DNA of 64,000 nucleotides. Source: Oopsacas minuta (lineage: Eukaryota; Animalia; Porifera). The stretch spans positions 124,001 through 188,000 of the forward strand of contig JAKMXF010000222.1 in assembly GCA_024704765.1 (NCBI GenBank), read 5' to 3'. Below the pieces are notes generated by a model. The model worked only from the letters and a program-made list of their open reading frames with translations, was not told the origin of the DNA and searched no databases. Of the stretch, positions 12,647 through 60,475 are shown one piece after another. The first letter of the stretch is position 1, and every line of letters starts with the position of its first letter. The translations under genes and the position numbers were made by a program.

Positions 12647-13960
12647 TTAATTAACCTGATGAACATCTTCAATAGTAGGAGGGGATACAGCTGTATAGCT
12701 AGGATGAGAGGGTATATGAGAACTTGTAATCGGTTTGAAGGTGGGGTCTGGTTGGTAAACTGGTTGCTGTGTGTGATGAAATGTTCCTTCTGGAATGTCC
12801 AGGTTGAATTCAGTGGGTGGGGCAGTGGGAAGACCAGAGGAGGGGGACACAATAGTTTGGGGTGAGAACTGAGTTGTGAAGAGATTTTTAGCAGAGGCAG
12901 TAGGTATAGGAGATTTCTTATCTACTTCCTGTCTTCTGTTTAGCTGTGTTGTGTCTTGTACAGGAGGGATATAAGGTTCTTGTATAGTGAAATCTTTGAT
13001 GGGAGCATGGATTAATGATTGATCTTGATCTGCTACTACGTTTTTTTCTGATAAAACTTGCTCTTGATTATGAGTTGTAAATATTTCTTGTATTGTTACA
13101 GGTTTTTTCTCAATATTCGTCTGAACATTTTCCTGTATTGTTACAGGTTTCTTCTCAATATTCGTCTGAACATTTTCCTGTATTGTTACAGGTTTCTTCT
13201 CAATATTCGTCTGAACATTTTCTTGTATTTTTCTCTGTGGTGAAGCAGGTAATAACTGGACATTAGCAAACTCACTGACTAGCTTATCTCTCTTCTCTCC
13301 TACTTCAATATCACTTTTACGCGGTGTACTCCTATCTTGTAAATTATTTTCAGAAATATTTGGTATTCGATGTAGATAACCAGTACCTACTCCACACCCT
13401 AAACTGCCTTCACCGCCCCAATTTTGATCTGGGATTATTACGACATCGCGACATTTATCACTAGCCACATTATAAACGAATAGTTTAACTTCTCTTCTAT
13501 TATTCTGCTCTATAAACGTGTCAAATTCCTCTTCCATCATTTCGTAACCAATGATATAATCAGTGTTAGAACATAGCCCAGCCTTTTGGGCTGGTGAATT
13601 GGGATAAACTTCTAAAATATGCCAAATATTATCCGACACATTTTCAAACGAACAGAACCTTATACTCACTCCTATAACACCCTGTCCTCCCCATTTATTG
13701 TTAGGAACAAGTCCTACTTCCCGCCAGGATCTACCTTTAATATTATACACACCCAATTTTACTTCTCTGTCCAAATGTGCTTTCAAGATCTCGATTAGAG
13801 TATCACTTTCTCTATCCAACCTCAATCCTTGTATTGTTACAATAAAATCGAAGTAAGCTTCAAGTTTTGATAAATCAGCTGGGGATTTGTCCTGTACCTT
13901 GAGTACATGGTACCCGTGTGTACCCCCTCCAGGAATAGGGGTTGATTGGTTACCTCCCAT
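12647..13960 (-). CDS. GORASP2: Golgi reassembly-stacking protein (GRASP55/65 family), intronless
   Basis: Myristoylation-type N-terminus MGGNQS, tandem PDZ-like GRASP domain (GYHVLKVQ, WGGQGVIGVSIRFCSF, WGGEGSLGCGVGTGYLHRIP) and a Pro/Ser/Thr-rich tail. Paralog assignment is uncertain. Confidence 0.92.
   Translation of the reverse strand: MGGNQSTPIPGGGTHGYHVLKVQDKSPADLSKLEAYFDFIVTIQGLRLDRESDTLIEILKAHLDREVKLGVYNIKGRSWREVGLVPNNKWGGQGVIGVSIRFCSFENVSDNIWHILEVYPNSPAQKAGLCSNTDYIIGYEMMEEEFDTFIEQNNRREVKLFVYNVASDKCRDVVIIPDQNWGGEGSLGCGVGTGYLHRIPNISENNLQDRSTPRKSDIEVGEKRDKLVSEFANVQLLPASPQRKIQENVQTNIEKKPVTIQENVQTNIEKKPVTIQENVQTNIEKKPVTIQEIFTTHNQEQVLSEKNVVADQDQSLIHAPIKDFTIQEPYIPPVQDTTQLNRRQEVDKKSPIPTASAKNLFTTQFSPQTIVSPSSGLPTAPPTEFNLDIPEGTFHHTQQPVYQPDPTFKPITSSHIPSHPSYTAVSPPTIEDVHQVN
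13085..13232 (-). repeat. 45-bp coding tandem repeat x3 (IQENVQTNIEKKPVT) in the GRASP tail
   Basis: Three near-identical 15-aa units visible in both DNA and protein. Confidence 0.9.
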
Positions 13961-14009
13961 GGGGTCAGTCTATTAGCTCATAACGAATAAAATACGATAG
14001 TAATAAAAT

Positions 14010-14165
14010 TCAACTCCTGTTATATCGATCATATATGAAGTACCCGCTTATATCAAAGTCTGAAATTATACAAATATGGTCCCAAACCGTCAAAGTAACA
14101 TAAATTCCATCGCCTATATCGAAGCAATTATCGCGGTCCCCTTGAGGTTCGATATAACAATTAAA
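14010..14165. mobile_element. Family B MITE between AP2S1 and GRASP
   Basis: caactcctgttatatcga...tggtcccaaaccgtcaaagtaacat...cgcggtccccttgaggttcgatataac. Confidence 0.75.
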
Positions 14166-14276
14166 ACCGTTCAAAGTTCGTATTTTAACACAATACTCAG
14201 TACATATAATATACAACACTATCAAGCTCTATACTAGCTCTATTGCACACTTATAGTTTTAGAAAATGACTAAAAA

Positions 14277-14883
14277 TCAGTCTAGCTTAGTGAGGGTATC
14301 CAAGCGCTGCAATACTTTAGTCTGTGAAGTTTCGCGTATTTCTCCAGCAAGGAACATCTCATCTACAGCAGCATACACCCTATAGAAGTTGAATACTAAA
14401 TCCAACTCACATACGTTATGGAAATGTTCATTCAAAACTTCCACGAAATTGTGAATAGCCTCGAGATACGCCAAGTTGTTGTCAGATACGTCACAGCATA
14501 GACAGAAGTACAGCCCAGCGTACCTATAAATAGATATAAAATAAAACTATTTCATACTTACTAACTCCCTTTACAAATTTCTTTGGATTTTTCATGAATA
14601 TTTTACCCCGAAAATATTCAGAAATATTGCAATAAAACAAATTTACGAGATTTTCAACAATTTCTCCTCAAAATGAAGTGAATTTCGGAAGGGTTTATTA
14701 CCGTCTGTAAATAACTTTAAAATCTCTAAAAGCAACAAAATTAGTATGCTTTGCATCTCTAACAGTAACTATAGCATGCACATCTTCAATCAGTTTCTGC
14801 TTCTCATCTTCCTCAAATAACATATACCATTTAGCTAGCCGAGTCTTACCAGCTCTGTTTTGTATTAAAATGAATCTAATCAT
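14277..14883 (-). CDS. AP2S1: AP-2 complex subunit sigma, two exons
   Basis: [20 protein letters not shown]...[12 protein letters not shown]...[29 protein letters not shown]. Confidence 0.97.
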
Positions 14884-14919
14884 ACTATATGTATAGTTTA
14901 AACATTGTAATAGACTGAC

Positions 14920-15103
14920 CTTATGCTTAATAGATATTTAACCATGGATGGTAAATTTCGTTTTTAAATACAAATCCCCCTCCAACCAAGCGAGGATTGC
15001 CTCAAAATGACCTAAAACAACATCCAATCAGATTAACGAAACCCACCATCCATGGTTAAATAATAATAATAACCACATAGGGAGCATTTTGCCATACCAA
15101 CGT
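14920..15103. mobile_element. Family A element with inverted core, between SUCLG2 and AP2S1
   Basis: About 30-bp inverted repeats; core ccctccaaccaagcgagg is the reverse complement of the core in the other copies. Confidence 0.8.
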
Positions 15104-15210
15104 AGGCAACGTTGTACGTAAAAACTCATCAACCACACATCGATAACTTATAATATATCACATAATTGGATATCAGTAGCAATAAGTAGTGAATAATATT
15201 ATTCGTATTA

Positions 15211-16637
15211 TTATTTGACAAATGACGTGACCTTCTCTGCGGCCATTGCCATATCATCAGCACTTATTATATTAAGTCCAGAATCTTCTAGAATCTTCTT
15301 CGCTTTGTCTCCGTTATTTCCTTCCAGCCTCGCGACTATTGGCACTTTCAACTCTAACTTTTTACAAGCAGCAACAATACCATTAGCAATTATCCTGCAG
15401 TCAACTATTCCACCGAAAATATTCACAAGGATAGCATTTACCTAAAACAAAGGAATTAAGTACGATTTGATGGATATACTTTCCAACTCAGGGAAATATT
15501 TGCAATTCTATGTGCATTTTTCCCAAATAATAATTACCTGGAAATTAGTATAAGTGGTTTGTAAATATACTAGTGACCCTGAATAATTATGAAATCACAA
15601 ACCTGAGGATCTTGAGTAATAATCTGGAAGGCAGCCTGCACTTGACTTTCCTGTACACCACCTCCACAATCCAGGAAATTAGCAGGCTCTCCATTATACA
15701 GTTTAATAATATCCATGGTTGCCATTGCTAATCCAGCCCCATTAACAAGACATCCTATATTCCCTGACATACCGACATAGCTCAGATTAGATTCTTGTGC
15801 TGCTAGCTCTCTAGGATCTGTCTCTGAATGATCCTGCATTTCAAATATCTTCCCTTGACGAAATTTCGCGTTATCATCAAAATTAATTTTAGCATCAAAA
15901 CACACTACTTCTCCTTCCCTCGTTAACCCTAATGGATTAATCTCTATCTGCGTAGCATCTACTGACGTGAACATTTTATACAGTTGTCTAATCTGTTTCG
16001 CGGTTATGTGAACAGCTTCACCTTTGAACCCTAAAGATTTCGCGATTTCAACTGAAGTATCATCATTTAAACCTTGGTCAATATCAATTGGATATTTGAA
16101 TATTCTCTCAGGGAGATTAGCAGCTACTTCCTCAATATCAACTCCACCATCAGTACTAGCTACTATAACAGGACCTCCAGCTGCCCTATCCAGTAGAATA
16201 GCTAAGTATCTTTCTTCTGTAATGTCCAATGCTCTTGCTATCATTACTTTATTAACCGTTACTCCATCAGGTGGAGTTTGCTTAGTTACCAGTTTAGCTC
16301 CAAGCATTTGACCAGCTAACCTTTCTACGTCATCAAGACTGTTAACTAGCTTCACTCCACCTACTAATCCGTTATCAAACTTACCCTTACCTCTCCCTCC
16401 AGCTAGAATCTGTGATTTTACTACATACTCAGTAACGTTAAGGCTACGCGCGGCTTCTAACGCCTCTTTAGCTGTACTAGCTATACCAAAAGGCTGCGTA
16501 TTAATACCAAATGATTGCATAAGCTCTTTGCTCTGATATTCATGTAAACTGAGACAGCGGGTTTGTGTAAGGAGAGTATTCAGTCTTGATGACTGTATGG
16601 TGCGTTGTGCGGATAATAGGAATTTGAATAAACTCAT
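15211..16637 (-). CDS. SUCLG2: Succinyl-CoA ligase beta subunit, GDP-forming type, mitochondrial; two exons
   Basis: [54 protein letters not shown]. Targeting-like N-terminus; intron about 15442-15602. Confidence 0.9.
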
Positions 16638-16691
16638 ATTTCTAAATATATTTGGGTATAATGTTACGTCATTTTCTAATTGATAATTATT

Positions 16692-16783
16692 TACAGTCAA
16701 CTCTCCTTATAGGGCAATACTCGCTTATATCGAACTAATTATCACGGTCCCTTGAGCTTCGATATTACGGAAGTTGACTGTAT
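16692..16783. mobile_element. Family B MITE, short copy filling most of the TADA1-SUCLG2 gap
   Basis: tacagtcaactc ... atcacggtcccttgagcttcgatattacggaagttgactgta. Confidence 0.78.
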
Positions 16784-16798
16784 CATATAAGCACTATA

Positions 16799-17578
16799 TT
16801 ATGATGGATGCCATAATTGCGACAATAACCGTTCATAATTTCGCGAAAACACAGTATGTGAGCAAATAACACTTTTGTATAGAGGTAGTATGTCTCTAGC
16901 ATCAAACAATGTAATTTTGTTATCAGGATATGGCAATGTAGTGTATTTTCTAAGAGACATCAAAGATATTGGCATTTCATAGTTTGGAGTTCTATCATTG
17001 GGAGTTGAACCAGGGATTGTGTATTTGTATTGTTTGCTAGTGAAGTCAACATTCCTTCTTCTCTTCAATCGACCCTTTTTGAAGGCTAAAAATGAGCATA
17101 TGTTCTTTAGAAATTCCTCCATCGCGAAAAATAACAACTCTTCAACTCTATTCCCAGAATCTTCAAGATTTTGTTCCCATAAGTGCAAAATAATCCGCGA
17201 TTTAATACTCGGAATATCTGGTAAGTATATATCATTCGGACAGAACGAAAGTTCTAGAACATTCTCAGCAGTTAGATTACCAGTTGACTGAGTATCAAAT
17301 ATAGTTGGATTGTAAATATTCGCATAAGTTCCATCAGCAACGAATGGATTAGACTCATCAGGAGTAGAAGGAGTAAATGACTTTAATAAAATAGCCATAA
17401 TAAACTGATTGTGTAAACAGAAGCTTTTTTCTGGCAACAGAGTTCTTGTAAGTTTATCAAACTCATCTTTAGTGATTTTCTGTTTGCACCATCTTTTTAA
17501 GATTTCTAGATATCTTGGTAGATTACCCTCTAGAACTTCTGATAGCTGTTTCTTTGCCTCCCAAAGTTCTACAGCCAT
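16799..17578 (-). CDS. TADA1: SAGA subunit TADA1-like
   Basis: MAVELWEAKKQLSEVL...WCKQKITKDEFD...HNQFIMAIL matches the Tad1 N-terminus. The longer ORF-track start runs into a MITE. Confidence 0.85.
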   Translation of the reverse strand: MAVELWEAKKQLSEVLEGNLPRYLEILKRWCKQKITKDEFDKLTRTLLPEKSFCLHNQFIMAILLKSFTPSTPDESNPFVADGTYANIYNPTIFDTQSTGNLTAENVLELSFCPNDIYLPDIPSIKSRIILHLWEQNLEDSGNRVEELLFFAMEEFLKNICSFLAFKKGRLKRRRNVDFTSKQYKYTIPGSTPNDRTPNYEMPISLMSLRKYTTLPYPDNKITLFDARDILPLYKSVICSHTVFSRNYERLLSQLWHPS

Positions 17579-17890
17579 TTGACTTATAATTATGGATACA
17601 AATTTTATACAGTGAAAATCTCCATAAACGAGTTGTGAAAATAAATAGAGCGAATTCGGAGTCCTATTCAAATGAACCTTAATAAACATGGAATTTCCCT
17701 CACGTTTGTGGAGGTTACACTATACCACAGCATATCAGTAACCCAACAAAATAGTGTAATTATTTCAAATAATTTACAACAAATCTTCTAATATACCCTA
17801 ATTGGTAATGTTTGTAACTATCAAAACTATGATTATAATACTAAACACAACAAAATACAAAGTATAAGATAGTGAGCCCACACTAAATTC

Positions 17891-18787
17891 TTATTTTTTG
17901 TTGAATTTTACGAAGTAATCCTTTACAAGCGCGTAATGGCCTTTGTTAATAAAGGAGAAGGAAATAACATTAAAGTATATTTGTTCACTTGATCCGAAGA
18001 AGGATGGACTTTGAACTTCCTGTAGTTCAGAGGATCTACGCTTTGAAGCTACATCTCTTGAGCGGCACTCCAACCAGACAAGTTTAGGTGATTTCACCTC
18101 TAAATCTCCTAGGGATAGAGTCAGGAGGTAATCATGAAGTCCTAGTATAGTATTGGTGTCCTCTGGAGCTGAGTGATGTATCATAGAATCTTCTCCCCAA
18201 TTCTCAGCCATTTCCAACTCTTTCGGAGCGATTAAAATGACAGAACCTTTCATTTGTCGCAGTTTAGCACCTGAATCTTCTTTCGGTACAAGTTTAGATT
18301 TGAAACCGAGTTCAAACATAGTTTTAACATCAACCCATTTGACTGGGTCAGGTGCTGTCTTAGAATTTCGCAAGACAACAGTAACTTTCTCATTAGGATT
18401 ACTACCAAGAAAAGCCTCAATTTCCATTGTGGCATCCCCTAATAGCATGCAAGCCTCGCCGTAATATAACCATACATCGTTCTTGTGCGAGGCTAACTGA
18501 AAGTCTAACAGTCTAACACCGAATTTCAATTGGTCTCTTATGGATATATCCTGGTATTGATGTTCCCCCTTAAATGCACCAGAATCATGACTTCCCAGCA
18601 TAATGATCTCATTCAGTGTTAGTTCATTCGTAAGTGCACCCATCCAATTGGAAGCTAGCGGACTTCCTTTACCAAACACAGAGCTTAATGCAGGATTCTT
18701 TGTCAATTTAGATGCAATGTAATCTGATTGGATTAATGAATCTTCTTTTTCAAGCTTGGGGGCTTCGCTTTCATTAGCAGTTGCCAT
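17891..18787 (-). CDS. PI-PLC X-domain-like protein, paralog 1, intronless
   Basis: NWMGAL...LNEIIMLGSHDSG...SIRDQLKFGVRLLD is typical of the PI-PLC X-box TIM barrel. Confidence 0.8.
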   Translation of the reverse strand: MATANESEAPKLEKEDSLIQSDYIASKLTKNPALSSVFGKGSPLASNWMGALTNELTLNEIIMLGSHDSGAFKGEHQYQDISIRDQLKFGVRLLDFQLASHKNDVWLYYGEACMLLGDATMEIEAFLGSNPNEKVTVVLRNSKTAPDPVKWVDVKTMFELGFKSKLVPKEDSGAKLRQMKGSVILIAPKELEMAENWGEDSMIHHSAPEDTNTILGLHDYLLTLSLGDLEVKSPKLVWLECRSRDVASKRRSSELQEVQSPSFFGSSEQIYFNVISFSFINKGHYALVKDYFVKFNKK

Positions 18788-19478
18788 CTTACAATAAATT
18801 TGGATTTGATTTCGCTAAGTATATTAATAGGACGGTAAATGCATACGTAACATTATGTACATTATAAAGAGATATTAATATACCTGTAATTGGCAACAGT
18901 TATATATTTAGAATATCACTGTTTACTTATATATTCGTATACAAAACTGATAGGAACAATTATAGCATAGGGTCTCACATTAGCCATTATGATCATGAAA
19001 AACGAAGCATGAACGTATAAACATTGAATAAGTATACATATTTTAAGAAATTACAAAGTCCTATATTTATTATTAAGAAAATTCCCAAAAGAATCAAAAT
19101 CCAGAATAGAAAGGTAATTTGAGCTTTTCAAAAGTTCTCAAATTTCCCACTCTGAACAATTATAATTCATGCCATTTTAATGAACGAGCACGCTTTGCTT
19201 GCTCGCGATCACATGGGCCTCGGCACTACTTGCCTCGAATTAAAACTATAGTACAACAAAATCAAAATTTATGAAATATAAACCACATACATATACTGTC
19301 AAAACAGGTTGAAACATAATGTACAAAACTTCAATATTATTGAGGAAATTCCAATTTAAAATCCTGCAAAGTAATTCGAGCTTTTGAAGGTTATCGTAAG
19401 AATCACGATAATGATCTAATAATAGAACATGATTAATAGCTCCTCCTTATAGTTTTCTCAAATAACATGGCAATCATA

Positions 19479-19624
19479 CTACAGTGAAACCTCCACAAAC
19501 GGGGCATGTGGAAACAGAGTGAAACAATAGAGCGAATTCATAGTCCCATGCGAATGAACATCCACAAACACGGGGTAGCATTTTACGGTGTCCACGGTAC
19601 CCCGTTGGTGGAGGTTACACTGTA
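19479..19624. mobile_element. Family C MITE (TA-CAGTGAAACCTCC termini) between the PI-PLC paralogs
   Basis: tacagtgaaacctccacaaacgggg ... ccccgttggtggaggttacactgta. Related copies at about 17617-17725, 25150-25270 and 51903-51950. Confidence 0.82.
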
Positions 19625-19716
19625 GGTTGAATACTGATAGGATATACACAAGTATAAAATTAATTACAATCTCTCATAGACCAAATAATACAAATATTCT
19701 CAAATATACAATCAAG

Positions 19717-20595
19717 CTACTGATTATTTGCCCAAATCCTGAAATACTCCTTGATCAGTGAAAAATGTGTGTTATCTACAAACGAAAAAGAGACAACATT
19801 AAAATGCAATCTCTCCTTTGCACTGAAAAAACTAGAGTCTTGTACTGTCAATATTTCCTCGCTAACACGTTTACTTATCTCGCTACGAGATCGACATTCA
19901 ACCCAAACAATTTTATCACCTTTTTCTTTCAAAAAATTTCCTTTAGTTAAACCCATAAGAAATTCATTGAGATTATTTTCAGTTGTCGCATGTTTTAAAA
20001 GTAACTCCAAACCAACATTTCGTTCCATGTGCAGCTCACCAGGTCCCATAAGAATTACATTACCATTCATCTCGTTAATATTCACATCAACTTGGTCTTT
20101 ACTCACTAACACAGCTGTAAGGTTATCCTCAAAACACTGTTTAACTGTAGCCCAATCCACGAGGGTATTGCAAGTAAGAGATTGTCTTAAACTTATAATA
20201 ACCCTCTCTGCAGGTTGTGAATTCACGAATTGATCAATTTCGATTAATACCTCTTTCAATAGCACACAAGGCTCTCCATAGAACAGCCATATAGCATTCT
20301 CATACTCACCAACCTGTATATCTAAGAAACGAACTCCCCAGAATAGCTGCTGTAAAATCGAACCAGATTGGTACTTCATTTTCCCACTAATAGCCCCTGA
20401 ATCATGACTACCTAACAGGTATAAATCTCTCAATTTGAATTGTCTGTTAAGTCTTCCCATCCAGTTTTTACCTAGCACCTTAATCCCTCTCTTAAACAGC
20501 ACGGTACTAGAATTATAGCTAGATGCTCTCGTTTTGAAAAGACAATCAGAAGATATTTCTTCCTCAGAATCGTCAATGTTTGAACCAGTAGCCAT
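19717..20595 (-). CDS. PI-PLC X-domain-like protein, paralog 2, intronless tandem duplicate
   Basis: NWMGRL...LLGSHDSG...SILQQLFWGVRFLD. Colinear with paralog 1, including the C-terminal WxECRSR and HFNVVSFSFV segments. Confidence 0.8.
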   Translation of the reverse strand: MATGSNIDDSEEEISSDCLFKTRASSYNSSTVLFKRGIKVLGKNWMGRLNRQFKLRDLYLLGSHDSGAISGKMKYQSGSILQQLFWGVRFLDIQVGEYENAIWLFYGEPCVLLKEVLIEIDQFVNSQPAERVIISLRQSLTCNTLVDWATVKQCFEDNLTAVLVSKDQVDVNINEMNGNVILMGPGELHMERNVGLELLLKHATTENNLNEFLMGLTKGNFLKEKGDKIVWVECRSRSEISKRVSEEILTVQDSSFFSAKERLHFNVVSFSFVDNTHFSLIKEYFRIWANNQ

Positions 20596-20999: not shown

Positions 21000-22391
21000 C
21001 TACATATTATTAATATTGTGATGTTTGAGTGTTTTCGCTAATCCATATGCTTCGCGTAGCATTATAAGACGTGGTCCCATAGGTATATTCAATAGTATAA
21101 GATGTTCTTCCGACATGTGAAAAAGCGCAGATAGAGTTATTTCCTCCTTCTCAAAATTTGATAGATAGCGTTCATAACCAAAGCGTCTTAAGAATGAAGA
21201 AAGGTCTTCTGTATGTGGGGGTACTTCACCGAAAAACTTTTCAATCTTTTTCTTATTTCCAGTCCGTAGTTCGTTATCTTTTACAGATGCAGTTTCGTTT
21301 GATTTCGTCTCATCTTCTTGCGCTAAGTTCGTTTGGGAAATTCGCTTGCCTAATCTAGACAGCTTATTTGCACCATACTTTTGTATATTTGAATCGACTG
21401 AAGTAGTCCTGCCAATATTCTTATCCCTGGTGTGTTTAGCAGTAGCTGGAGGAATATTTATCGATTCACAAGATTCTTTCCGCGTTGGTGATAACGACTG
21501 TTCCGCGAATTCACGTCTCTCAAGCGGATCTCTATTGAACCTAGTTTCCGCGAGATCACTTTGTAAACTCTCCATTCTCCGTCGCATATCAGACTGGAAT
21601 TTTTTCTGACTTTCCTTGAGTTGTGTAATCTCATTCGCTACTGTATTGAATTGTCTCATAATCTCTACTACTAAAGAATCATAGCGTTTCAATGTATTAC
21701 TGATTCTCTTCATATATCCTTCCATATCATGCTTAGCTTTCTTACGATCTGTCAACCAGAGACCTTTGACTAGTGACAACTCTTGAAGAATTGAACATCT
21801 CTCTTGATTGAACATTTCCAATAAAATTTCCATTTCTGAGTGTATCTCATAAGCTACGTCATTTGATACTTGAGTAATGTGTAGATTAGAGTTAGATGGA
21901 GAAAGTGAAGGTGAGGGAGGAGTTGAAGATGTTTTGGAGTTAGAATCTGACTTTTTACTCGCTAATAATCGTTCTAAAGCTGGGAAATTCATAACTCCAC
22001 TCAAAGAGCTCCGTTTCGTAGAACTAGATAGCATATTAGGAGGATTTGACACGGGTAAGGGAGGAGGTGATGGGCTACTAGGCTCATGGGTCTGTGAATT
22101 CATGTTTGGAGATGGAGGACGTTTGGGTAGCATCTTAGTTAGATTCGTAAACCGACTCAATGCATTTGATTCTTGTTCTAATTTAGATTTACTATTATTC
22201 TGTGTTTGTAAAGTGATTGGGTTGAAGATAAATTTTTCTTTAGAAGACCGTAGCGGATTGGCAGTTGGTTGTGAAGTACGTTGGTTAGCAACAGCCAAAG
22301 CATCTGAGTTAGACTGCACGCGGGGACGAGATAGCGATGATGTAAGCAAGCCAGGAGAAGACACTGAATTGTTTGTTGTTATAGGCTCCAT
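21000..22391 (-). CDS. Uncharacterised protein: Ser/Pro-rich N-terminus, central coiled coil, C-terminal SAM domain
   Basis: 463-aa ORF. C-terminus EDLSSFLRRFGYERYLSNFEKEEITLSALFHMSEEHLILLNIPMGPRLIML fits the SAM consensus. Confidence 0.75.
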   Translation of the reverse strand: MEPITTNNSVSSPGLLTSSLSRPRVQSNSDALAVANQRTSQPTANPLRSSKEKFIFNPITLQTQNNSKSKLEQESNALSRFTNLTKMLPKRPPSPNMNSQTHEPSSPSPPPLPVSNPPNMLSSSTKRSSLSGVMNFPALERLLASKKSDSNSKTSSTPPSPSLSPSNSNLHITQVSNDVAYEIHSEMEILLEMFNQERCSILQELSLVKGLWLTDRKKAKHDMEGYMKRISNTLKRYDSLVVEIMRQFNTVANEITQLKESQKKFQSDMRRRMESLQSDLAETRFNRDPLERREFAEQSLSPTRKESCESINIPPATAKHTRDKNIGRTTSVDSNIQKYGANKLSRLGKRISQTNLAQEDETKSNETASVKDNELRTGNKKKIEKFFGEVPPHTEDLSSFLRRFGYERYLSNFEKEEITLSALFHMSEEHLILLNIPMGPRLIMLREAYGLAKTLKHHNINNM

Positions 22392-22610
22392 ATATCATGC
22401 TACGTAGGCCTAATCAATAATAGCATGTAATTACTATATAGTTTGTGGAAGAACCTTAAACTTTGATAGAAAATAATCAGAATAATTCATGATAATATTT
22501 TGGGCACGTAAGTATTATCATTACTATGTAATTAAAGCTGGAGATATTATCTGCACTTTGGGAGTCATTATTAACATAATCTAATGTTTCTAGAGAGAAT
22601 GTGCTATAAC

Positions 22611-23706
22611 TTAATTGTCTGTATTGTTTGGTGTCTGGACTGGTTCAGCTGTCCCGTGTACATCTGGGTTAATACAGTCCCAAGCTTGATCAGTACCTTC
22701 ATGCCATAAACTCACCTTATTGTCTCCGCTAGAAACCGCGAGGATATTACCCATAAGCGACCAGCTGACATGCCAAATCATATCAGAAAACGGTGGTAAT
22801 ACAACAGTAGTCCACTCTGTTGTCTCAAAGGGTCGTTTCCAAATTATAACACTTAGATCTTGACCTCCTGAAGCTATTACTTCTTCTACAATGCCTGTAG
22901 CTGGTGCCCAGGCTACTGAACGTACCCAATCAGAGTGTTTACTCAGCACCTGAATATGAACATAAAGTAAATAACAACAAAAATCTCAGAATCGATTCTT
23001 ACTTCAATATTCTTCCATTCACCCATTTCATCTCTCTGCCAGATCTTAACCAAATTATCACAGCCACCAGATACAAATCGTACTGGTGCGGGGTCAGCTA
23101 CCATCCCTGGTGCAAGGAACTGTGGATTATGCGGAGGAGCCCAGCTGATACTATTACAACCAATATCATGTGCATTCACGATTTTCTTTTCCTGCCACTC
23201 TCCAGTCGGTGTGTGTGTCACGACAGATATAGCACCGTCACTAGAGGCACATGCTACTGTGAGATCCCATTCTGGCGGCGAGAAGTCTATACTATTGACA
23301 GATGACGTATGTCCTCTGTATTCGTGCAAGACATCCCAACTACCATCATCTTTTTCTTGCCAGAAAAGTATTCGTCTAAATTTAAAGGAAATAAACATTT
23401 TTTGGATCTTTTATCAATACATACATACCTATCGTATGAACATGTTGCTAGGACAGAGCCGAACTTAGGATGCGCCCATGATACCTGCCAAACGGGCCCC
23501 TCATGCCTGTTAAGTTTCGCGGTTTGTTGATGAGAACCGTCAGATAGAATCCTGAAAATCTTCACTGAGTGATCAGAAGAACAAGTAGCTAACCGTTTAC
23601 CGTAGAAATCTAACTGAGCATCATGTATTATATCTTCATGTCCTGTCTCTATTGTGTTTAGTACACCCACTGGTGTAGCTGGTGGGATTGTACCGGAAGT
23701 AGCCAT
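22611..23706 (-). CDS. SEC13: COPII/nucleoporin SEC13, three exons
   Basis: [66 protein letters not shown]; two short GT-AG introns. Confidence 0.97.
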
Positions 23707-24072
23707 TATCTTTATACGGAAAAAGCTACTATGAATAGTAATATATTTATTGGTATAACTACAAATTGTTACATTCAGTTTTCTTTTTTTCTATATGTAA
23801 ATTTTGGGATGGAATACGGGGAATAATGAGAAATCCTGGGATTTGCAATTGAGTATGCGATTTTATAACTAATAAAATAAATGGATATCTAGCATTTCGT
23901 TCCGCGGATATTTCTCAGATTATTTCTTCGCCTCACCTATTCCTTACAAAAGTTCACCCACATACAAATATAATAAGAAAGCACATTCGTACACATAAAA
24001 TTTCACAAATAAGTAATCATTACAATATACACAAAGAGAATAGATTGACAAAATATTATAAGTGATCCCTTC

Positions 24073-24828
24073 CTATACCTCCACATAAATATCCTGTGTC
24101 TCTCGACTACGTAGACACATAACACAATAACTAAGTACTACTCCAGTAATCTCAAAGAGTGCCAGGAGTATAGCAACCGAAATGAGAATAGCTCCCCACA
24201 TTTCTACTGTGTTGAAGAACAATTCAACACACCCAACTTGATAAATATCAGAATATTGTATGCAGAAGTCATAACTTGATGTCGAATTGTCCCCACAACA
24301 GCTAAGGGGTGTAATCGCGTTATCATATTTGTTGTTAATCCACGATACATCTTTCCAGTCATCTGGTCCGTATGCACCACAACAAAGCAGGCTTTGTTGG
24401 ATATTATCAATCGCCTCGGTTATGGCATCGTCACTTTGGTATTGATATTGATCCATATTAGCTAACATAGCGAATCCCATTTGCTCATAGATATCACTAC
24501 GGAACACTACAGCTAAAATCCCACCGATTATTTGTACAACTAAAACTATTATCAGTAGAATATTGTATGTTAGGAGAATGCTAGAATTAGCGCAGACGGC
24601 CCCTATAATACCCAGAAACCCCAGAACAATAAGCAGAACTCCGCACAGACCGATTACAATAACAGGTACTACAATATACACAGCGCTTGTAGTGTTAAGG
24701 AATATGTCATAAGTACGCGAGGCTATGAAAAAATCAGCTGCTACGTAGAGTAGGATCCCAGCTATCACCCAAAGTAGAACATTGAAGATTACCAGTAAGA
24801 TTGCAAATAGTATTCGCCAGAAACCCAT
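24073..24828 (-). CDS. Tetraspanin, intronless
   Basis: Four hydrophobic segments; large extracellular loop with CCG and PLSCC motifs and a GC before TM4. Confidence 0.92.
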   Translation of the reverse strand: MGFWRILFAILLVIFNVLLWVIAGILLYVAADFFIASRTYDIFLNTTSAVYIVVPVIVIGLCGVLLIVLGFLGIIGAVCANSSILLTYNILLIIVLVVQIIGGILAVVFRSDIYEQMGFAMLANMDQYQYQSDDAITEAIDNIQQSLLCCGAYGPDDWKDVSWINNKYDNAITPLSCCGDNSTSSYDFCIQYSDIYQVGCVELFFNTVEMWGAILISVAILLALFEITGVVLSYCVMCLRSRETQDIYVEV

Positions 24829-25460
24829 TTCTATATGGTATGTAGACTAGAACTAATATTTGTGTATGAATCTATTAATAATAATACTAAGTGGTTATAA
24901 TCAAATATATACCTACGAAATTGCCTAATGCACGAAGGCTTATTACAACAGAAAAGAATCAGATAACTGCTAGAACCCCATACAAATGAGTCATTCCTCA
25001 TCTGTTGGTTTCCATGTTATATATTCAATATGCTACTGATTGTTTGTTTGTTTGTTTGGGACTTTAACATGCACTTGACAGGCTCTTGATAACTTATATG
25101 GTTGTGTTATGCAGCATTTATAAATATTTGTAAATATTAATAATATGCGTATATCGAACCTCCTCTAACGGGCCTGTGGAAACGAGGAACTTATGGAAAC
25201 GGAGTGAAAAAATAAAACAAAAATTCCTGGTCCCATACGAGAGAACCTGCACAAATGGGGAATTTGGCAAAACTGGGAAACGGGGCAGCATTTTTGGCAT
25301 CCCTGAAGGTTACATAGTATAAAACCCCCATGGGTAGTCAAAACGAATGGACAAGTTCTTCCAAATATATTCATATATGATAAAACTGAGCCATGAAATA
25401 TTGTCAAATAAATTAAAAATATAGCAAACTATATGTAAAATCCGAAATACAAAACTATTA

Positions 25461-26866
25461 CTACCTTTTCTTCCGTGGTTTCAATTCTTCATCAGCTTTT
25501 CGTAAGAAAATATAATTCTTTTTGCTTGGATCGAATTTCTCATGCCCTTTTGACCAATCATAACTAACTGCATAGCCGAAAATCTGTCCAGTAAAATTAA
25601 AATCACAAGAAACAATAGGTTGTGTCATTTGTTCAGAAGTTTTAAGCTTAGTACGAGCGTTTTTATCCCAGTAGCTGAACTTATTATCAGAGCCAACAGT
25701 AGCTAATGTTCCATGTACAGGGTGTACTGATATATCATTAACGACATAAATATCCTGTATTTGTGAGGTATTTTGCGGCGGAGCTGACCTATGGCATTTA
25801 AATGTGAAATTATCTACACTAGGATTAGGTGTGTTTATATAATGTATAGCAACACGGCCTTCAATAGAACCTAATGCGAATCCAGAAGGTTTATCTTTAT
25901 CAGAGAATATACTCACACAGCGGTGTTGGTATTTGAGAGGGGAATCAATCTGTTTTAATAAAGCAGGTGTGTTTTCTAGGTTGTAGAGTATTACTCCTCG
26001 ATTAGCTGTCCCAACAACACAAAGTGGGAAAACCTATGGAAAACCGTGATTAGTATTTAATTAGTTGAAATACTAATCAGCCAATAGGAATTTAACCGGA
26101 TTAAAAGTCGTTGAAAAACAGATTTTGTTTTATGAGAGACCGTATATATATGTGGGTACAGTGAAATCTCCACAGACGAGGCCTGTGGAAACGGAGTGAA
26201 AATTAAATAGAGAGAATCAACAGTCCCTTAAAATGAACCTACACAAACGGGGGAATTTGGATTCTCGGCGTCCCTGACACCCCGTTTGTGGAGGGTACAC
26301 TGTATAAGTAAAACTGACCACATCAGTACAATAACATCTCTCCGGTAGCTGAATAGAGAGCTGAGGCGTAGAGCTTCTCGTGTCCCAGAACTTCAAAGTC
26401 TTATCCCATGATCCAGTCATTAGACAGCTATAAGATTTCCCTTCTATCCAATGTACAGACTTGATAGGGCTCTCATGCATTGCTACATTCATTGACTGGT
26501 TAGTAGCGAGATCCCATATTTTAGCATAGTTGTCACATCCAACTGTAAATGCCTTTGTTCCGTCCTAGGAACAGCGTATTAAGTAGTGCATAACTTGCGC
26601 AAATTATATGCAAGATTTCGTCAACATACCGAATGCCAGCAGCATGACAACGCAGGTCCCTCATGTGCTATCTGGGCCTTCAATACAGAACCAGTATCAG
26701 CTATTTCCCAGCATCTAACTGTATTATCCCAAGAGCTACATAGTATATAGTTAGCATTTGGAGAGAATTTGATCATGCTGATAGAGTCATCCGGGCAGTT
26801 AGGTAACTCCACGTCCTTCATAGGGTTGTGATTAGTAAGGAGATTTCCAAAATTCATGCCTGTCAT
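25461..26866 (-). CDS. RAE1: mRNA export factor RAE1/Gle2, multi-exon
   Basis: [56 protein letters not shown]. Confidence 0.95.
26157..26304. mobile_element. Family C MITE in a RAE1 intron
   Basis: tacagtgaaatctccacagacgagg ... ccccgtttgtggagggtacactgta. Confidence 0.82.
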
Positions 26867-26975
26867 CCACCTGCAACTAATGATCAATCAATACAATAAT
26901 ATGTAACACTAATTAGATAAAGGAGAAGTAATTGAATTTTAGAATTGTTTAATAATTAGCCCATAATTTCTACTG

Positions 26976-27632
26976 TCACTCTTCATAATAGAAAGGTTTT
27001 TCTGAGTTGAAATAATTAAGAAATTGCCAACGAGTTGACTTTAGCGGTGAGAGAGGTGGGATGCCTTGGAAAGGTCTTGTGTAAGAGTAGCACTGATCGA
27101 AAACAGAATCTATTATTTCCCTAGCTTGGTCATAACTAACTCCTTCCTTTACTGTAGAAATAGATTGAGCCGCGCGGTGTTTCACACATTCGCGATTATG
27201 AGATTTGAAACCAAAATTGAAACGTATAAAGTTTTCTTTCGAAAAGGAGCATTCACCACTCAAATTCGCTGCCCTTACCTCAGTACAAGCTAAATGTTTC
27301 AAATCATGCCAATCCAAATTTACGGACTTGTCATCAAACGAATGTACCAATTCATGTGTCAGAACTTCATTCATATGTATCTGCGAATAGATATTATTTT
27401 CGCAAAGAACAATTTGTTGTCGACGAGGATCGAATCCACCAGCTACCCTAGGCGAACAAGGTTCACAGGCAAAATCTCTTGAAATTTTGACTGGAAATCC
27501 AGCCTCATGCATTGATATCAACATGTGTATTACAGTGGGATCAGTTTTGATGCTGCGTGCGAACCGTGTGAGACAAGTGCTATGGGAACGTGGGTCAGTA
27601 GAAGTATATTCTGTGGATACATCTTCACCCAT
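26976..27632 (-). CDS. ATP23: Mitochondrial inner membrane protease ATP23
   Basis: Metalloprotease motif HELVH, plus AGGFDP and HLACTEVRAANLSGEC. Start at MGEDV is inferred. Confidence 0.92.
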   Translation of the reverse strand: MGEDVSTEYTSTDPRSHSTCLTRFARSIKTDPTVIHMLISMHEAGFPVKISRDFACEPCSPRVAGGFDPRRQQIVLCENNIYSQIHMNEVLTHELVHSFDDKSVNLDWHDLKHLACTEVRAANLSGECSFSKENFIRFNFGFKSHNRECVKHRAAQSISTVKEGVSYDQAREIIDSVFDQCYSYTRPFQGIPPLSPLKSTRWQFLNYFNSEKPFYYEE

Positions 27633-27805
27633 AATGGCTATACAGTGAAAAATTGAGAATGAAGAAACCAATTGGATAGTATAGAGGTAACGTTCATATT
27701 TTTCAATTTTTGATAAAATTCTAAATCGTGATACGTTGTTCCCCATATGATTGTGAAAGGGTAGATAAATGAACACGAATTAATTAACCGATCGCTACGC
27801 TTCAA

Positions 27806-28065
27806 ATATAATAGCCTCTTGGAAGTATTTACTATTCTCTGGAAATTTTAATAGCCTCTAGAAAAATACAATATTCTCTGGGACATTTTACTATAATCTG
27901 GAACATATAATAGCCTCTGGAAAATAAAATAGCTTCTGGAAAATATAATAGCCTCTGGAACATATAAATAGCCTCTGGAAAATAATATAGCCTCTGGAAT
28001 ATATAAGAGCCTCTGAAAATATAATAGCCTCTAAGACAATATAATCATATCCTGGAAACTATAAT
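27806..28065 (+). repeat. Degenerate tandem array of about 19-20-bp units (atataatagcctctggaa)
   Basis: About a dozen imperfect copies of AATAGCCTCTGGAA, in reverse-complement orientation to the array at 28221-28645. Confidence 0.85.
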
Positions 28066-28220
28066 ATTATCCCAGAGAATAGTATCATGTATGCACACAT
28101 GTCATCGAGGAGAATAATGCTCCAAGAGGGTATTATTTCCGACAAAATAGTATTGTTATTATACCCATAGCTAGTAACTTCTCAGTGTTTTTTTCCAAAG
28201 GCCATTAAATTATTCCAGAT

Positions 28221-28645
28221 GAATTATATTATCATAGAGGCTGATATATTATTCCAGAGCAATTATATTATAATAGAGGCTGATATATTATTCCAGAGTA
28301 ATTATATTATAATAGAGGCTGATATATTATTCCAGAGTAATTATATTATAATAGAGGCTGATATATTATTCCAGAGTAATTATATTATAATAGAGGCTGA
28401 TATATTATTCCAGAGTAATTATATTATAATAGAGGCTGATATATTATTCCAGAGTAATTATATTATAATAGAGGCTGATATATTATTCCAGAGCAATTAT
28501 ATTATAATAGAGGCTGATATATTATTCCAGAGCAATTATATTATAATAGAGGCTGATATATTATTCCAGAGCAATTATATTATAATAGAGGCTGATATAT
28601 TATTCCAGAGCAATTATATTATAATAGAGGCTGATATATTATTAG
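28221..28645 (+). repeat. 39-bp minisatellite, about 11 near-perfect copies
   Basis: Unit aattatattataatagaggctgatatattattccagag(c/t), itself a dimer of diverged 19-20-bp subunits. It produces the spurious ORF (NYIIIEADILFQS)n. Confidence 0.95.
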
Positions 28646-46810: not shown

Positions 46811-47395
46811 ACAGCTATTCATACTATTACGTCATCGCTGATACGTGCTCGTACAGCACAACCAAACTGTTGATTGAGTGTGATATTAAAGGAGAGATAA
46901 GATAGTGATTGTCTCTGTACTCTCATTAGCTAATCAGCTGATATTCTTGCTATAATGAGGCATGTCAGTCTGCTTAGTGAATTAGATAGCAGGTGCAAAT
47001 TATACTATATTGATAGGAGTGATTTATTTATATTGGGTGTATAAGATCAGATACCATTAGTGCTGTTTTCTCTCTGTGAATTTTGTTCTGAATAACATTT
47101 ACATAAAAATGTAATTCAGAACAGAGAGCACTGAGAGAGAACAGCACTAATGGATCTGATCTTATACACCCAATATAAATAAATCACTCCTATCAATATA
47201 GTATAATTTGCACCTGCTATCTAATTCACTAAGCAGACTGACATGCCTCATTATAGCAAGAATATCAGCTGATTAGCTAATGAGAGTACAGAGACAATCA
47301 CTATCTTATCTCTCCTTTAATATCACACTCAATCAACAGTTTGGTTGTGCTGTACGAGCACGTATCAGCGATGACGTAATAGTATGAATAGCTGT
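46811..47395. repeat. Near-perfect inverted repeat (about 250-bp arms, imperfect centre); foldback/MITE-like, TA-flanked
   Basis: 46811-47060 is the reverse complement of about 47145-47395, with one 1-nt indel noticed by eye. Confidence 0.95.
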
Positions 47396-49843: not shown

Positions 49844-50102
49844 TTGTGAATTTCAATCGATACGTTTTGTAAATAAATAAGCCCTAATCCTATCTAGCTG
49901 TTTTAAATACTATTACTATAATAGAGTGATAGAATATTCTAGAATTTTCGTTGGCCACATTTATCCACTGTACTAATTTAGAATATTCTAGAACACCATT
50001 TGATAATTAATTCATTGCAGTCAAATTCATTACAAAATAAATGAAGTCTAAATAATACAATTTGACTATTAAAATTGTTCTAAAAGAGAAATTTTCTAAA
50101 TT

Positions 50103-51832
50103 TCAAACACTGATAGTTTTGAAAATATTGAATCCGCTTTCAGCAGTGCTAATCATAATTCCTGGTAACTGTGAATGCCAATGTATTTCTTTAATTTGTT
50201 TCTGACCTTTGTGCACGAATAATAGCTGAGGTGGTATACTGGTATCCTCGTCCATAGTACTATCAGTGACGTCACGTTCTGCAGATAAATCCCATTGTGT
50301 TATCTGGTTGTCTTCACCACTACCAGCAAACACAGGTGAATCCGATGGATGCCATTCGACCGACGTGATAGGACCGGAATGTTGCTTAAATAGTGCAGCA
50401 CAAGTTCCGTCACTAATTTTTCTCAAATCCCATACCTTTAACATTCCATCATCTCCACCACTCACTATAAACGGTTGTATTCTATTCCAAGTAATAACAT
50501 TAACATCTACGTCATGTGCTTGTGTAGTCAGCATACAAGCTTTATGCGGAGCAGCTCTAATATCCCACACACGAATAGTACCATCACAACTGCAAGAAGC
50601 GAATACAGTATCTTCATTCGGGCTCCATTGTAAATCCTCTACACTTTTAATATGCGCTGTGTATGGACGTTGATCTACATGCCAACCGCCCTCAATCGGT
50701 TGCCATAGATGTATATTTTTATTACAGTCACCTGTTAATAATCTACCTGGTACATTTCGCGACCAATCCATTGCGAAACCTTCACATTGATGGCCTGCGA
50801 AACTAAAAATCGGCTCGCATTTAATTCGTTCATCTGTCGGACCGGAAACGGAGGCTTGAATTGCCGCGAAATGTTTATCAAACTCATATATACTAACAAC
50901 ACCTAAATCCGACCATGTACTGACAATACATTTACTAGGGATATGTGAGTAACGTAGTCGATTAACACCACCATTATGAGCAATATTAATATTATCTAAT
51001 TCTGGCTTATCATCATAGTACTCGGATTCTTGTGAGGAATCACTGTCATTTTCATTTTCTTGGGTTCTCACTAGATTGTGTAGTTTCATTATTATAATAC
51101 TGTTTAGTGTGGGTAGAGTGGAGCTTGTGGTACCTACAATGATATGACATTAACATTCATGCAATCATTCAATATAGCATCTTTATATGGAGTTTATTAA
51201 CTTCCTTAAAAGGAATTTATTTCTATGTTTACTTGAAATATAATAGAATAAATGCACACTCAAATAAATACTTCCAGTAATTGAGCTCTAACAAGTATTT
51301 TGAATGAAATTTGGCTATGTTTTCACCATAATTTTATCTCTTCAACACATAAGTTTATATGAAAATTATATAGCTAACTAGTAGCTACAAATTTTGTGTA
51401 AAAATAGCCTTATGGACCATGAATATTCATTATCCATTATAACTACAGTCAAGTCCCGTTTTATTGAACACAGTTATATCGAATACCCGCTTATGTGGAA
51501 GTCCGAAATTGTACAAATATAGTCCCAAACATAATTTATACCGGTTATATCGAAGTAATTATCACGGTCCCTTGAACTACGATATAACAGGAGTTGAGTG
51601 TGCTATATTAACATAAACCTGCGGCTAAATACACTGTAAGTGGGTATTCTATTCCAGCGGGGATAGATGGGTTAGGAATGACGTCAAATGTCAGACATGG
51701 TATTCCTGTCTGCATAGCATGGTACAGTTCATAAGCTGAACTGTCATATGCCAACTCTTCATCTGATGAGTTTTCAGGTTTGCTTTGTTCCATAGCAACA
51801 GGAGGTGTTTGTGGAATGTTAGCTTCTGCCAT
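50103..51832 (-). CDS. GRWD1: Glutamate-rich WD repeat protein 1; two exons, MITE in the intron
   Basis: YDSSAYELYHAMQTGIPCLTFD, HNGGVNRLR, EGFAMDWS, SVEDLQWSPNE, PPQLLFVH. Confidence 0.93.
51443..51602. mobile_element. Family B MITE in the GRWD1 intron
   Basis: tacagtcaagtcccg...cgaagtaattatcacggtcccttgaactacgatataacaggagttgagtgt. Confidence 0.78.
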
Positions 51833-52144
51833 TTTAGAGTTTCTCTCTGTGAATTTGCTCTAAAAATGATTTAATATTGCGAGCATAAAGCTATCTCCAG
51901 TAATAGTGAAACTTCCACAAACGGGCCTGTGGAAACGGAGTGAAAAATAAAGATTCACATAGTATAAAGCCGAGCAAAAATAGTATTCAAGCACTACCAA
52001 CCTCATACGTACACAACTATTAATAACATGTTAATATTAATTATAATATAATAATAATACTGACTTTTACATTCTTGTAAAATCATTACAATATCACATG
52101 ATAAAATGAAAACGGCTAAGCTAATCAACCACAAGCACAGTTCT

Positions 52145-53245: not shown

Positions 53246-53326
53246 ACATAAGTTTGATAAAATAATCATAATTAAGTGATATTTTGCAAATTACCTAAAG
53301 TAAAGATTTCTAATAGAAATTTTGAG

Positions 53327-55400: not shown

Positions 55401-55857
55401 TGTAATAACAATCTTATTTTTACACAAAAACAAATGAGTCAATTTATGTCTATTTTGTACATTAGCCTATGGAATTTTTTCAAGGATTCGAACATGTAAT
55501 AAGGAATTGTATGAAGACTTACATTGTAATACACACACACAGTAAATAAGCCATATACATTATGTGCAATTCATTGATAAAATGAATTATCATGGCGAAC
55601 CAATTGACCCATAAAACGGACATAAAATAGTGTTAATTATTGGTTGAATTCATCCGCTCTAGTCAAGAGTAATCCGTCAATAGCGGAAAATAACTCGCTG
55701 AGTACCTGTATATAACCTAATGATTCACACTGTAATCAATTGCCGTTAATGTAGAAATTCTATATAATAAATATTAAAATATTTAGATTAATATAAAAAG
55801 GAAAATAAGAGTAAATACAAATAGAATAACAATTAATTATGCCTAGAAGTGAGCAGG

Positions 55858-59049: not shown

Positions 59050-59076
59050 TCTCTAGCTCTGTTTGGAAGGAAATCT

Positions 59077-59178
59077 ACAGTCAACTCTTTTTGTGTTAAT
59101 TTGACAGTTGGGACCATATTTGTTTAATATTAGGCTTCGATATAAGCGGGTGTTTCGATATGACAGGAGTTTACTGTA
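59077..59178. mobile_element. Family B MITE, deleted copy just upstream of KRIT1
   Basis: tacagtcaactc...gggaccatatttgt...cgatataagcgggt...ggagtttactgta. Confidence 0.72.
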
Positions 59179-59419
59179 ATACACAACGTATACGTATATC
59201 GGTGATTTACATATTTTACCACAAGAAAATGCGAATTTTTAGTGCCTAGAGAATATATCATAAACTGAACAACAAATAACAAAATCATTTGTTTACCTAA
59301 AAAGAAATACATGTCAATTCAGGAGTACAGTTTCAAACAATCCTGTCTCATAATACTAAAACTGAGCAATAATTGAGCCTAATTGAATTGAATTGATAAT
59401 ATTTACAAATATATTGTAT

Positions 59420-60475
59420 CTACTGCTGTTGAGTAGAGTTTCCATTGTAAGTATTGCTCTCATCGTCTTTATCTCTAAGATCTGATAATCGAAACATATT
59501 TCCTCGCCGGCCTATTACACGTGTTGAGCTGTTAGATTTCGCGTTTTGTGCAATTGAACTGGTATGTGTTGTGTCTATCTGGGGTTGTGTATTGTTTTGG
59601 TTTGTACGTGCTGGGAAGAAGTACGCGAAAATTGCCGCGAAAAATGCGAATATAGCAGTGAAAATTGGCCGTATGCTAAATTTCGCGATTTCAGTAACTG
59701 CAATATGTACAATCAAGCCAGAACCAGTTCGTATATCAAGATCCTGTAAGGTCATTACATCTTGATCTGGTTGGAATTCCTCTCTGGGGTGAGGACGAAT
59801 TATAGTAATATCTTTCAGTCCTGGGATTCTATCTCGAAGGAAATGTTTCAATTCTGCTAACGTATTCGTAGGTTGGAAAGAGTTGGAAATATGTGAACCA
59901 TCAGGAAGTGTAAATTTGATTCGACAATTATTGCTTATAATTTGCCGTTTTGTGACTATATTATCAGTAACCTTTGGCTCAGATTTCTTTACTGTAATCA
60001 TTGGCATAGGTTTGTCTTCTTGAACGATCTGTTTTTCAGTTTTCACCGTTTCTAAAATAGGTATTGGTTCGGGTTCGGGTAAGTTCACTAGTTCATTGAG
60101 TGGGTAGTAAACTTGATTGCTGTCATTTCCTCTCCCAATGTTCTCGAGGGAATATTTTAAAATTTTGATTAAATATTCCTGCGAAATTTCTCCCCTTATT
60201 GCTTCAACCACAACACCGTTTGAGGCTATAAAACATATGAAAGGGGGTGTACCCAACTTGTAAAAAGCCGCGAAATCATTGTAATTCTGAGAAGGAAATT
60301 TTATATCAAGCGTAATGGCATTGTTGTTACATAAAACTGTTTTCACCTGATTGGATTCAAAAATATTTTCATAGAATTTTCCATCTGAAATAATTGCGAT
60401 AAGTAAAGAACCTGTTGATTTCACCTTTTCTATAAAAGATGGAATGTTTGTATTTTCACTCTTTCCACTCGACAT
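59420..60475 (-). CDS. UBXN4: UBX domain protein 4 (erasin)
   Basis: Thioredoxin-like N-terminus (PFICFIASNG), UBX domain (CRIKFTLPDGS...FQP), hydrophobic hairpin and C-terminal NTYNGNSTQQQ. Confidence 0.9.
   Translation of the reverse strand: MSSGKSENTNIPSFIEKVKSTGSLLIAIISDGKFYENIFESNQVKTVLCNNNAITLDIKFPSQNYNDFAAFYKLGTPPFICFIASNGVVVEAIRGEISQEYLIKILKYSLENIGRGNDSNQVYYPLNELVNLPEPEPIPILETVKTEKQIVQEDKPMPMITVKKSEPKVTDNIVTKRQIISNNCRIKFTLPDGSHISNSFQPTNTLAELKHFLRDRIPGLKDITIIRPHPREEFQPDQDVMTLQDLDIRTGSGLIVHIAVTEIAKFSIRPIFTAIFAFFAAIFAYFFPARTNQNNTQPQIDTTHTSSIAQNAKSNSSTRVIGRRGNMFRLSDLRDKDDESNTYNGNSTQQQ

Follow-up and report, generated by a model that had tools for sequence, protein, structure and literature searches.

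In the glass sponge Oopsacas minuta, 22 consecutive genes lie on the minus strand, from GRASP at the tail to UBX at the head, in a 64,000-nucleotide (nt) stretch of contig JAKMXF010000222.1 (assembly GCA_024704765.1, positions 124,001 to 188,000 of the forward strand; this whole stretch is called the window, and positions are counted from its first letter). The run is real and non-random, and comparison with other assemblies shows that it is ancient, with order and orientation shared with three other glass sponges. In the most distant of these, addition of a spliced leader is directly shown on two genes inside the run, RNA crosses spacers between genes in both this species and Oopsacas, and STIP1, in the middle of the run, has conserved promoter motifs. 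The reading that we favour, with considerable reservation, is that the run is a mosaic in which genes with promoters of their own alternate with short co-transcribed groups, making several transcription units.

Gene content and orientation of the run

Public gene calls and Pfam domains on long open reading frames (ORFs) give the following order from the tail: GRASP, AP-sigma, SUCLG2, TADA1, PI-PLC-X (PLCX, two copies), a SAM-domain gene, SEC13, tetraspanin, RAE1, ATP23, an adhesion G-protein-coupled receptor (GPCR), a glypican-like gene of 1613 amino acids (aa), annexin, FAAP24-like, STIP1-like, GRWD1, MOB, a PP-loop ATPase, SH3, KRIT1 and UBX. The genes are functionally unrelated, and counting the adhesion GPCR together with the glypican-like gene as a single gene would bring their number to 21. 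An initial annotation, made from the sequence alone, had described a one-strand run of 21 genes of unrelated function from GRASP to UBX with plus-strand genes on both sides, and the public gene calls bear this out: DNAJC13, TTLL4 (with INTS10 nested antisense) and KATNB1 are on the plus strand at the tail side, and an SLBP-like gene, a caspase and PUS1 at the head side, followed by RIC1 and INTS1 on the minus strand. No hidden plus-strand gene was found within the run.

The Oopsacas genome paper, which gives the accession on which exact protein matches place the window, reports 16,413 genes, an average of 1.59 introns in each and intergenic stretches averaging 2 kb (PMC10280926). By our own arithmetic, approximately 0.004 runs of at least 22 genes would be expected genome-wide if this number of genes were randomly oriented. 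In the 76 kb of annotation seen, 26 of the 29 neighbour pairs are co-oriented, and it is therefore probable that co-orientation is a property of the genome and not of the locus; outside the run and its two borders, five of the six neighbour pairs are still co-oriented.

Conservation in other glass sponges

A search with ATP23 found five assemblies in ENA with orthologues 65-82% identical on long contigs, compared with about 50% in demosponges, and these five were taken as other glass sponges. The most distant is species D (ERZ20067936, ATP23 65% identical); species C is ERZ25071281, and species E is represented by metagenome scaffolds (MOB 85% identical). The run of species D is on one strand of a single contig and extends over about 53 kb. 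Its head half reads UBX, KRIT1, SH3, PP-loop, MOB, GRWD1, STIP1 and FAAP24, then glypican-like repeats and the GPCR, after which the tail half continues with ATP23, RAE1, tetraspanin, SEC13, SAM, PLCX (single in species D, two in Oopsacas), TADA1, SUCLG2, AP-sigma and GRASP. This comparison covers all but about 11 kb in mid-run, and annexin was not seen in the part covered. The tail junction is identical, GRASP being convergent with KATNB1, which is followed by TTLL4 with the nested INTS10. At the head, the run of species D also opens with UBX at a strand switch, across which two TANGO2 genes take the place of SLBP as divergent neighbours. Species C is collinear with Oopsacas from the glypican-like repeats to PLCX, and species E has SLBP on the minus strand and then UBX through annexin, the same as Oopsacas. 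The strand switches that bound the run are kept in both species D and species E.

Two side observations concern gene content. Between GRWD1 and STIP1, species D has an extra gene resembling saccharopine dehydrogenase (L008 12528-13733), which is absent in Oopsacas and species E, where the spacer is 259-357 nt (window 49844-50102); it represents a clean loss or gain inside the run. In the tail flank, INTS10 and a short abutting upstream ORF lie antisense in an intron of TTLL4 (6684-8806; L007 19234-20876), a nesting that species D has kept, and the short ORF may be the first exon of INTS10, split off by a tiny intron.

Spliced leader and RNA across spacers

Two short Logan contigs of species D, L009 and L013, were recognised as transcripts. 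The MOB contig L009 opens with 27-29 letters that have no counterpart in the genome and are joined at an acceptor 40 nt upstream of the ATG; past the MOB stop it continues for 242 nt, which leaves about 107 nt to the GRWD1 acceptor. L013 carries this leader too, one base shorter and attached 5 nt ahead of the PLCX ATG; it is then collinear with the genome through PLCX, through the entire unspliced 253-nt spacer, whose acceptor is unused, and through all of TADA1, ending 61 nt past the TADA1 stop, beyond an AATAAA and with 73 nt remaining to the SUCLG2 ATG. Among all 23 loci, the last 15 letters of the leader occur only in these two contigs and in no genomic locus. Two leader variants one base apart were seen in species D; leader addition is directly shown for the internal genes MOB and PLCX, and L013 is the strongest hint of a two-gene RNA. 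A leader RNA gene was not found in the window or in any of the compared loci, and a look-up of species D TADA1 for further RNA contigs matched only the genome contig.

In Oopsacas, four read sets were mapped on positions 22300-28299: X2 and X3 are DNA sets of even depth, X4 is an RNA set, and X5, which covers exons only, derives from a relative 95-99% alike. X4 has an exon depth of 800-20,000 and, at two joints, one in SEC13 and one in RAE1, shows GT..AG ends of the minus strand. Its contigs cover the whole of two spacers (Table 1) and, at a depth of 207, most of the SEC13-SAM spacer. Depth in these spacers (65-207) is about 0.5-5% of that of the exons, and in the RAE1 intron it is only 8.75, so the spacer RNA is not DNA carry-over. 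One X4 contig carries 10 foreign letters (AAAAACTTAC) joined at the tetraspanin acceptor, and as the species D leader has a similar 3' end, leader addition to tetraspanin is hinted at also in Oopsacas. The ATP23 contig of X5 ends at 26918, past the ATTAAA and about 47 nt before the RAE1 acceptor, with the restriction that contig breaks do not give exact 3' ends. A loose end at SEC13 in X5 was rejected as a leader, being diverged homologous sequence.

Promoters and conserved blocks inside the run

Spacer comparison between Oopsacas and species E revealed a conserved 130-nt block directly upstream of STIP1. It contains two arrays of alternating GAA/TTC units, the pattern of heat-shock elements, and a TATA-like box (TATTTAAAA), together placed 58-150 nt before the ATG. 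The box is identical in species E and similar, in a looser form, in species D; both arrays keep their distance to the ATG in species E and also in species D, where another gene lies upstream, and the proximal element is invariant across the three species. No YAG occurs within 40 nt of the STIP1 ATG. STIP1/HOP is a classical target of heat-shock factor. It appears from these motifs that STIP1 has a gene-specific heat-shock/TATA promoter in the middle of the run, and a conserved promoter in this position would mean that the run is not one giant transcription unit. The palindromic motif TAGAATATTCTA, considered as a general spacer signal, was rejected, as it is the STIP1 heat-shock element. Trimers resembling this element (TTCnnGAAnnTTC) were found 11 times in the window, with 0.77 expected, at positions including 1229, 11184, 15281-15298, 17247-17264, 30315 and 41013; several are in coding exons (TADA1, SUCLG2, GPCR, DNAJC13) and, unlike the STIP1 pair, they are not conserved in species D.

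Upstream of tetraspanin, a block conserved with species C lies 62-280 nt from the leader acceptor and is a candidate gene-specific promoter or enhancer. The head spacer between UBX and SLBP holds a 180-nt block (60913-61091, z=26) conserved with species E, and smaller blocks conserved with the same species precede SH3 and MOB. In the KRIT1-SH3 spacer, species E shares the block at 55473-55524, likewise 72 nt away from the SH3 ATG; part of this block, GTTCGAATCC, is similar to a tRNA B box, and ARAGORN found no tRNA there. Comparison with species E or C showed no conserved block in the UBX-KRIT1, SH3-PP-loop, STIP1-FAAP24, ATP23-RAE1, tetraspanin-SEC13 and SEC13-SAM spacers.

A conserved element of a different kind forms the first 120-150 nt of the 3' untranslated region (UTR) of MOB. 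The mature mRNA contig L009 contains it, and only 78-230 nt are left between it and the GRWD1 ATG. The MOB protein itself is only 85% (species E) and 71% (species D) identical, and the adjoining spacers do not align; the stretch represents an ultraconserved 3'UTR element or an embedded small RNA.

Spacers and repeats

Stop-to-ATG spacers within the run are 109-929 nt, save three larger gaps of 1.4, 2 and 3.7 kb, and most are 200-900 nt. The short gaps that the initial annotation had listed were exact to the nucleotide (ATP23-RAE1 109, TADA1-SUCLG2 161, SEC13-SAM 219 and GRWD1-STIP1 259 nt), and the miniature inverted-repeat transposable element (MITE) that it had seen in the TADA1-SUCLG2 spacer is real, with 91 nt and inverted ends of 20 nt; before its insertion the spacer was about 70 nt. 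An AATAAA or ATTAAA within 260 nt past the stop was found in just six of 21 genes, and poly(A) sites are therefore unpredictable from the sequence.

The MITE belongs to a family with inverted ends TACAGTCAACTC found in several spacers and introns (16692-16782, 59077-59177, 62754-62935, 51445-51601), and the window has 14 copies of this end motif where 1.06 are expected. A separate repeat lies in the RAE1 intron (26178-26304). Downstream of FAAP24 there is a near-perfect MITE-like palindrome with arms of about 115 nt (~46985-47215), the core of which recurs at the matching place in species D (L008 16806-17042). Two minisatellites occupy the 1.4-kb gap between the GPCR and ATP23. One (27804-28045, 19 nt x 12.5) is polymorphic in length in the DNA run X3; the other (28209-28643, 39 nt x 11) yields a spurious plus-strand ORF of 150 aa, and the only free-standing plus-strand ORF (28219-28671) was rejected as a gene, as it is this minisatellite. 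Small ORFs in the 3.7-kb gap matched no family, and a tRNA and Rfam scan of the window gave no matches.

Table 1. Positions in the window of the run, its borders and the elements described in the text.
Feature	Position	Strand	Basis or remark
Run, GRASP (tail) to UBX (head)	12647..60475	-	gene calls, Pfam, spacers
GRASP	12647-13960	-	public gene call
UBX	59420-60475	-	public gene call
Tail convergent spacer, GRASP (-) / KATNB1 (+)	12180..12646	.	gene calls; same junction and neighbours in species D
Head strand-switch spacer, UBX (-) / SLBP-like (+)	60476..61148	.	holds conserved block
TADA1-to-SUCLG2 spacer, 161 nt	16638..16798	-	91 nt (16692-16782) are MITE; 134 nt in species D
PLCX-to-TADA1 spacer	17579..17890	-	species D counterpart 253 nt, crossed unspliced by leader-bearing RNA contig
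RNA contig over whole tetraspanin-to-SEC13 spacer	23703..24097	-	X4, depth 111; exon depth 2,000-20,000
RNA contig over whole RAE1-to-tetraspanin spacer	24859..25498	-	X4, depth 65
Tetraspanin leader acceptor (TAATAG, then exon)	24871..24875	-	~43 nt before ATG
Tetraspanin upstream block, 220 nt (candidate)	24934..25152	-	Oopsacas vs species C, z=29; TGACTCA 24987-24993
ATP23-to-RAE1 spacer, 109 nt	26867..26975	-	ATTAAA 22 nt past stop; acceptor TTGCAG 4 nt before RAE1 ATG
TATA-like box TATTTAAAA	49901..49909	-	58 nt before STIP1 ATG, downstream of heat-shock elements
Two heat-shock-element arrays upstream of STIP1	49932..49993	-	4 units 49932-49949; 3 units 49981-49993
MOB 3'UTR element	51994..52143	-	~93% identical in species E and D (L014 10679-10830; L008 10692-10811)

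Discussion

On the reading favoured here, a compact genome with spliced-leader trans-splicing carries the run as an ancient head-to-tail array of unrelated genes, divided into several transcription units. STIP1 would then be driven by its own heat-shock/TATA promoter, tetraspanin probably by another, and the divergent UBX/SLBP region would head the run. For ATP23-RAE1, PLCX-TADA1-SUCLG2 and MOB-GRWD1 no conserved upstream block was detected, outside the MOB 3'UTR element, and transcription probably continues through these tight pairs. Cleavage of the upstream message at its 3' end, together with addition of the leader at the acceptor just before the ATG, would then free the downstream one, and the outcome would be short operon-like units; in species D, contigs end about 70-110 nt before the next acceptor for PLCX-TADA1-SUCLG2 and MOB-GRWD1. 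Co-orientation may plausibly be kept as read-through into a same-sense, trans-spliceable neighbour would be harmless or useful, while an inversion would lead to antisense collisions. Co-transcription as the source of functional downstream mRNAs is inferred, and so is this reason for the co-orientation. The initial annotation had suggested operon-like or long polycistronic transcription, and its weak form, restricted to tight pairs, is compatible with all our data and has suggestive, unproven support from RNA, whereas a cluster initiated at its head alone conflicts with the conserved STIP1 promoter.

Several observations weigh against the mosaic. The 109-nt spacing of ATP23 and RAE1 is not conserved, as species C and D have 360-500 nt at this place, and spacers of 200-900 nt could each hold a promoter. 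Nearly all spacers are unalignable with species D, so lack of conservation says little and a missing block is weak evidence. A YAG ending within 12 nt of the ATG was found in 11 of 21 genes compared with 27-32% of control ATGs (p=0.01-0.04), which is a weak enrichment, and the tetraspanin case indicates that the acceptor in use need not be the one nearest the ATG. The RNA expected across intergenic gaps was found, in that contigs cover whole spacers and L013 spans two complete genes, but contigs do not prove single molecules: L013 and the spacer contigs may be merged overlapping RNAs, for example a PLCX message and a TADA1 precursor, and single polycistronic molecules and the downstream mRNAs made from them are therefore unproven, even for the tight pairs. 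In addition, the tail flank, whose genes are not co-oriented with those of the run, has kept its synteny equally well, and conservation is thus not specific to the run and no proof of a functional unit.

One alternative is that all genes are monocistronic with promoters of their own and that their co-orientation is inherited synteny, either neutral or merely avoiding convergent collisions, in which case the spacer RNA would consist of read-through noise, overlapping UTRs and unspliced 5' ends. We regard this as possible, if fairly doubtful. While it agrees with the STIP1 motifs, the tetraspanin block, the size of most spacers, the equally conserved tail flank and the low spacer depth relative to exons, it does not readily explain why a leader-bearing contig crosses two whole genes, why, at ATP23-RAE1, TADA1-SUCLG2 and MOB-GRWD1, contigs stop only about 47-110 nt short of the following acceptor, how short the TADA1-SUCLG2 spacer was before the MITE, or the 26 co-oriented pairs of 29. 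At the other extreme, the whole 48-kb run could be one kinetoplastid-like polycistron, transcribed from the UBX/SLBP switch and resolved by leader addition and polyadenylation. This is very improbable given the conserved heat-shock elements and TATA-like box at STIP1, which has no acceptor within 40 nt of its ATG, the conserved block upstream of tetraspanin, and the 1.4- and 3.7-kb gaps in the run, which hold minisatellites and a MITE; a complete INTS10 nested antisense in an intron of the adjoining gene also implies a promoter of its own. The row of 22 same-strand genes, bounded by strand switches on either side and retained in other glass sponges, would nevertheless suit such a polycistron, as would the RNA in every spacer examined and the sole synteny break seen in species D, which is exactly at the head. 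An artefact of annotation or assembly can practically be dismissed as the source of the run, since the DNA runs X2 and X3 cover 6 kb collinearly, independent assemblies of three other species share the order, and Pfam domains confirm the strand of each gene.

Going beyond the mosaic, we can suggest only tentatively, with almost as much belief as doubt, that glass sponges have true spliced-leader operons, for example PLCX-TADA1-SUCLG2, ATP23-RAE1 and MOB-GRWD1, inside arrays that predate the split of the sampled lineages. As in spliced-leader operons, at least two same-strand genes lie close together and the leader is found on genes inside the run at an acceptor near the ATG. A stretch between cistrons free of promoters, as operons have, is contradicted at STIP1 and probably at tetraspanin, and six other spacers are without a conserved block. 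Douris et al. in 2010 reportedly gave the original report on hexactinellid leaders. Leader trans-splicing is known in glass sponges (PMC10282587), and a review of 2021 states that neither operons nor polycistronic mRNAs had by then been described from them (PMC7986045); our literature searches turned up none since, and the Oopsacas genome paper is silent on operons, polycistronic RNA and trans-splicing (PMC10280926). The conservation of the run, the leader on its internal genes, the RNA across its spacers and the conserved STIP1 promoter motifs are new here. If the tight pairs are true operons, they would be the first in a sponge, extending operon-type gene expression to this group, and the run would provide a conserved test bed in multiple species where genes with their own promoters stand beside candidate co-transcribed pairs. 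Such a mixed architecture would help to address why leaders and operons arise together, and through the STIP1 heat-shock promoter, co-regulation of the neighbours could be probed by simple experiments.

Among known systems, the closest in organisation are the spliced-leader operons of nematodes (C. elegans type), which likewise consist of unrelated same-strand genes with a leader on the downstream ones, show a poly(A) signal and, no more than about 50-110 nt beyond it, an acceptor directly ahead of the following ATG, and include arrays in which some genes have internal promoters. Here, in contrast, most spacers are 200-900 nt, no equivalent of the SL2 leader is known, the operons are only candidates, and the animal is a sponge, a group from which no operons have been reported (PMC7986045). 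The tunicates Ciona and Oikopleura share with Oopsacas a compact genome, leader trans-splicing and co-oriented runs of housekeeping genes in their operons. Intercistronic spacers of tunicates are near zero, whereas the shortest one here is 109 nt. Polycistronic units of kinetoplastids resemble the run in having tens of unrelated genes on one strand between strand-switch regions and a leader on the mRNAs. The one-strand cluster bounded by strand switches was found also here, but initiation at the head alone disagrees with STIP1: the run has a putative gene-specific heat-shock/TATA promoter inside it, as well as cis-introns, and 22 genes rather than hundreds. Finally, conserved microsynteny blocks of animals keep order and orientation over deep divergence, as this locus does together with its neighbouring nested gene pair; those blocks are usually explained by shared enhancers at developmental genes, while the genes kept together here are tightly packed housekeeping genes.

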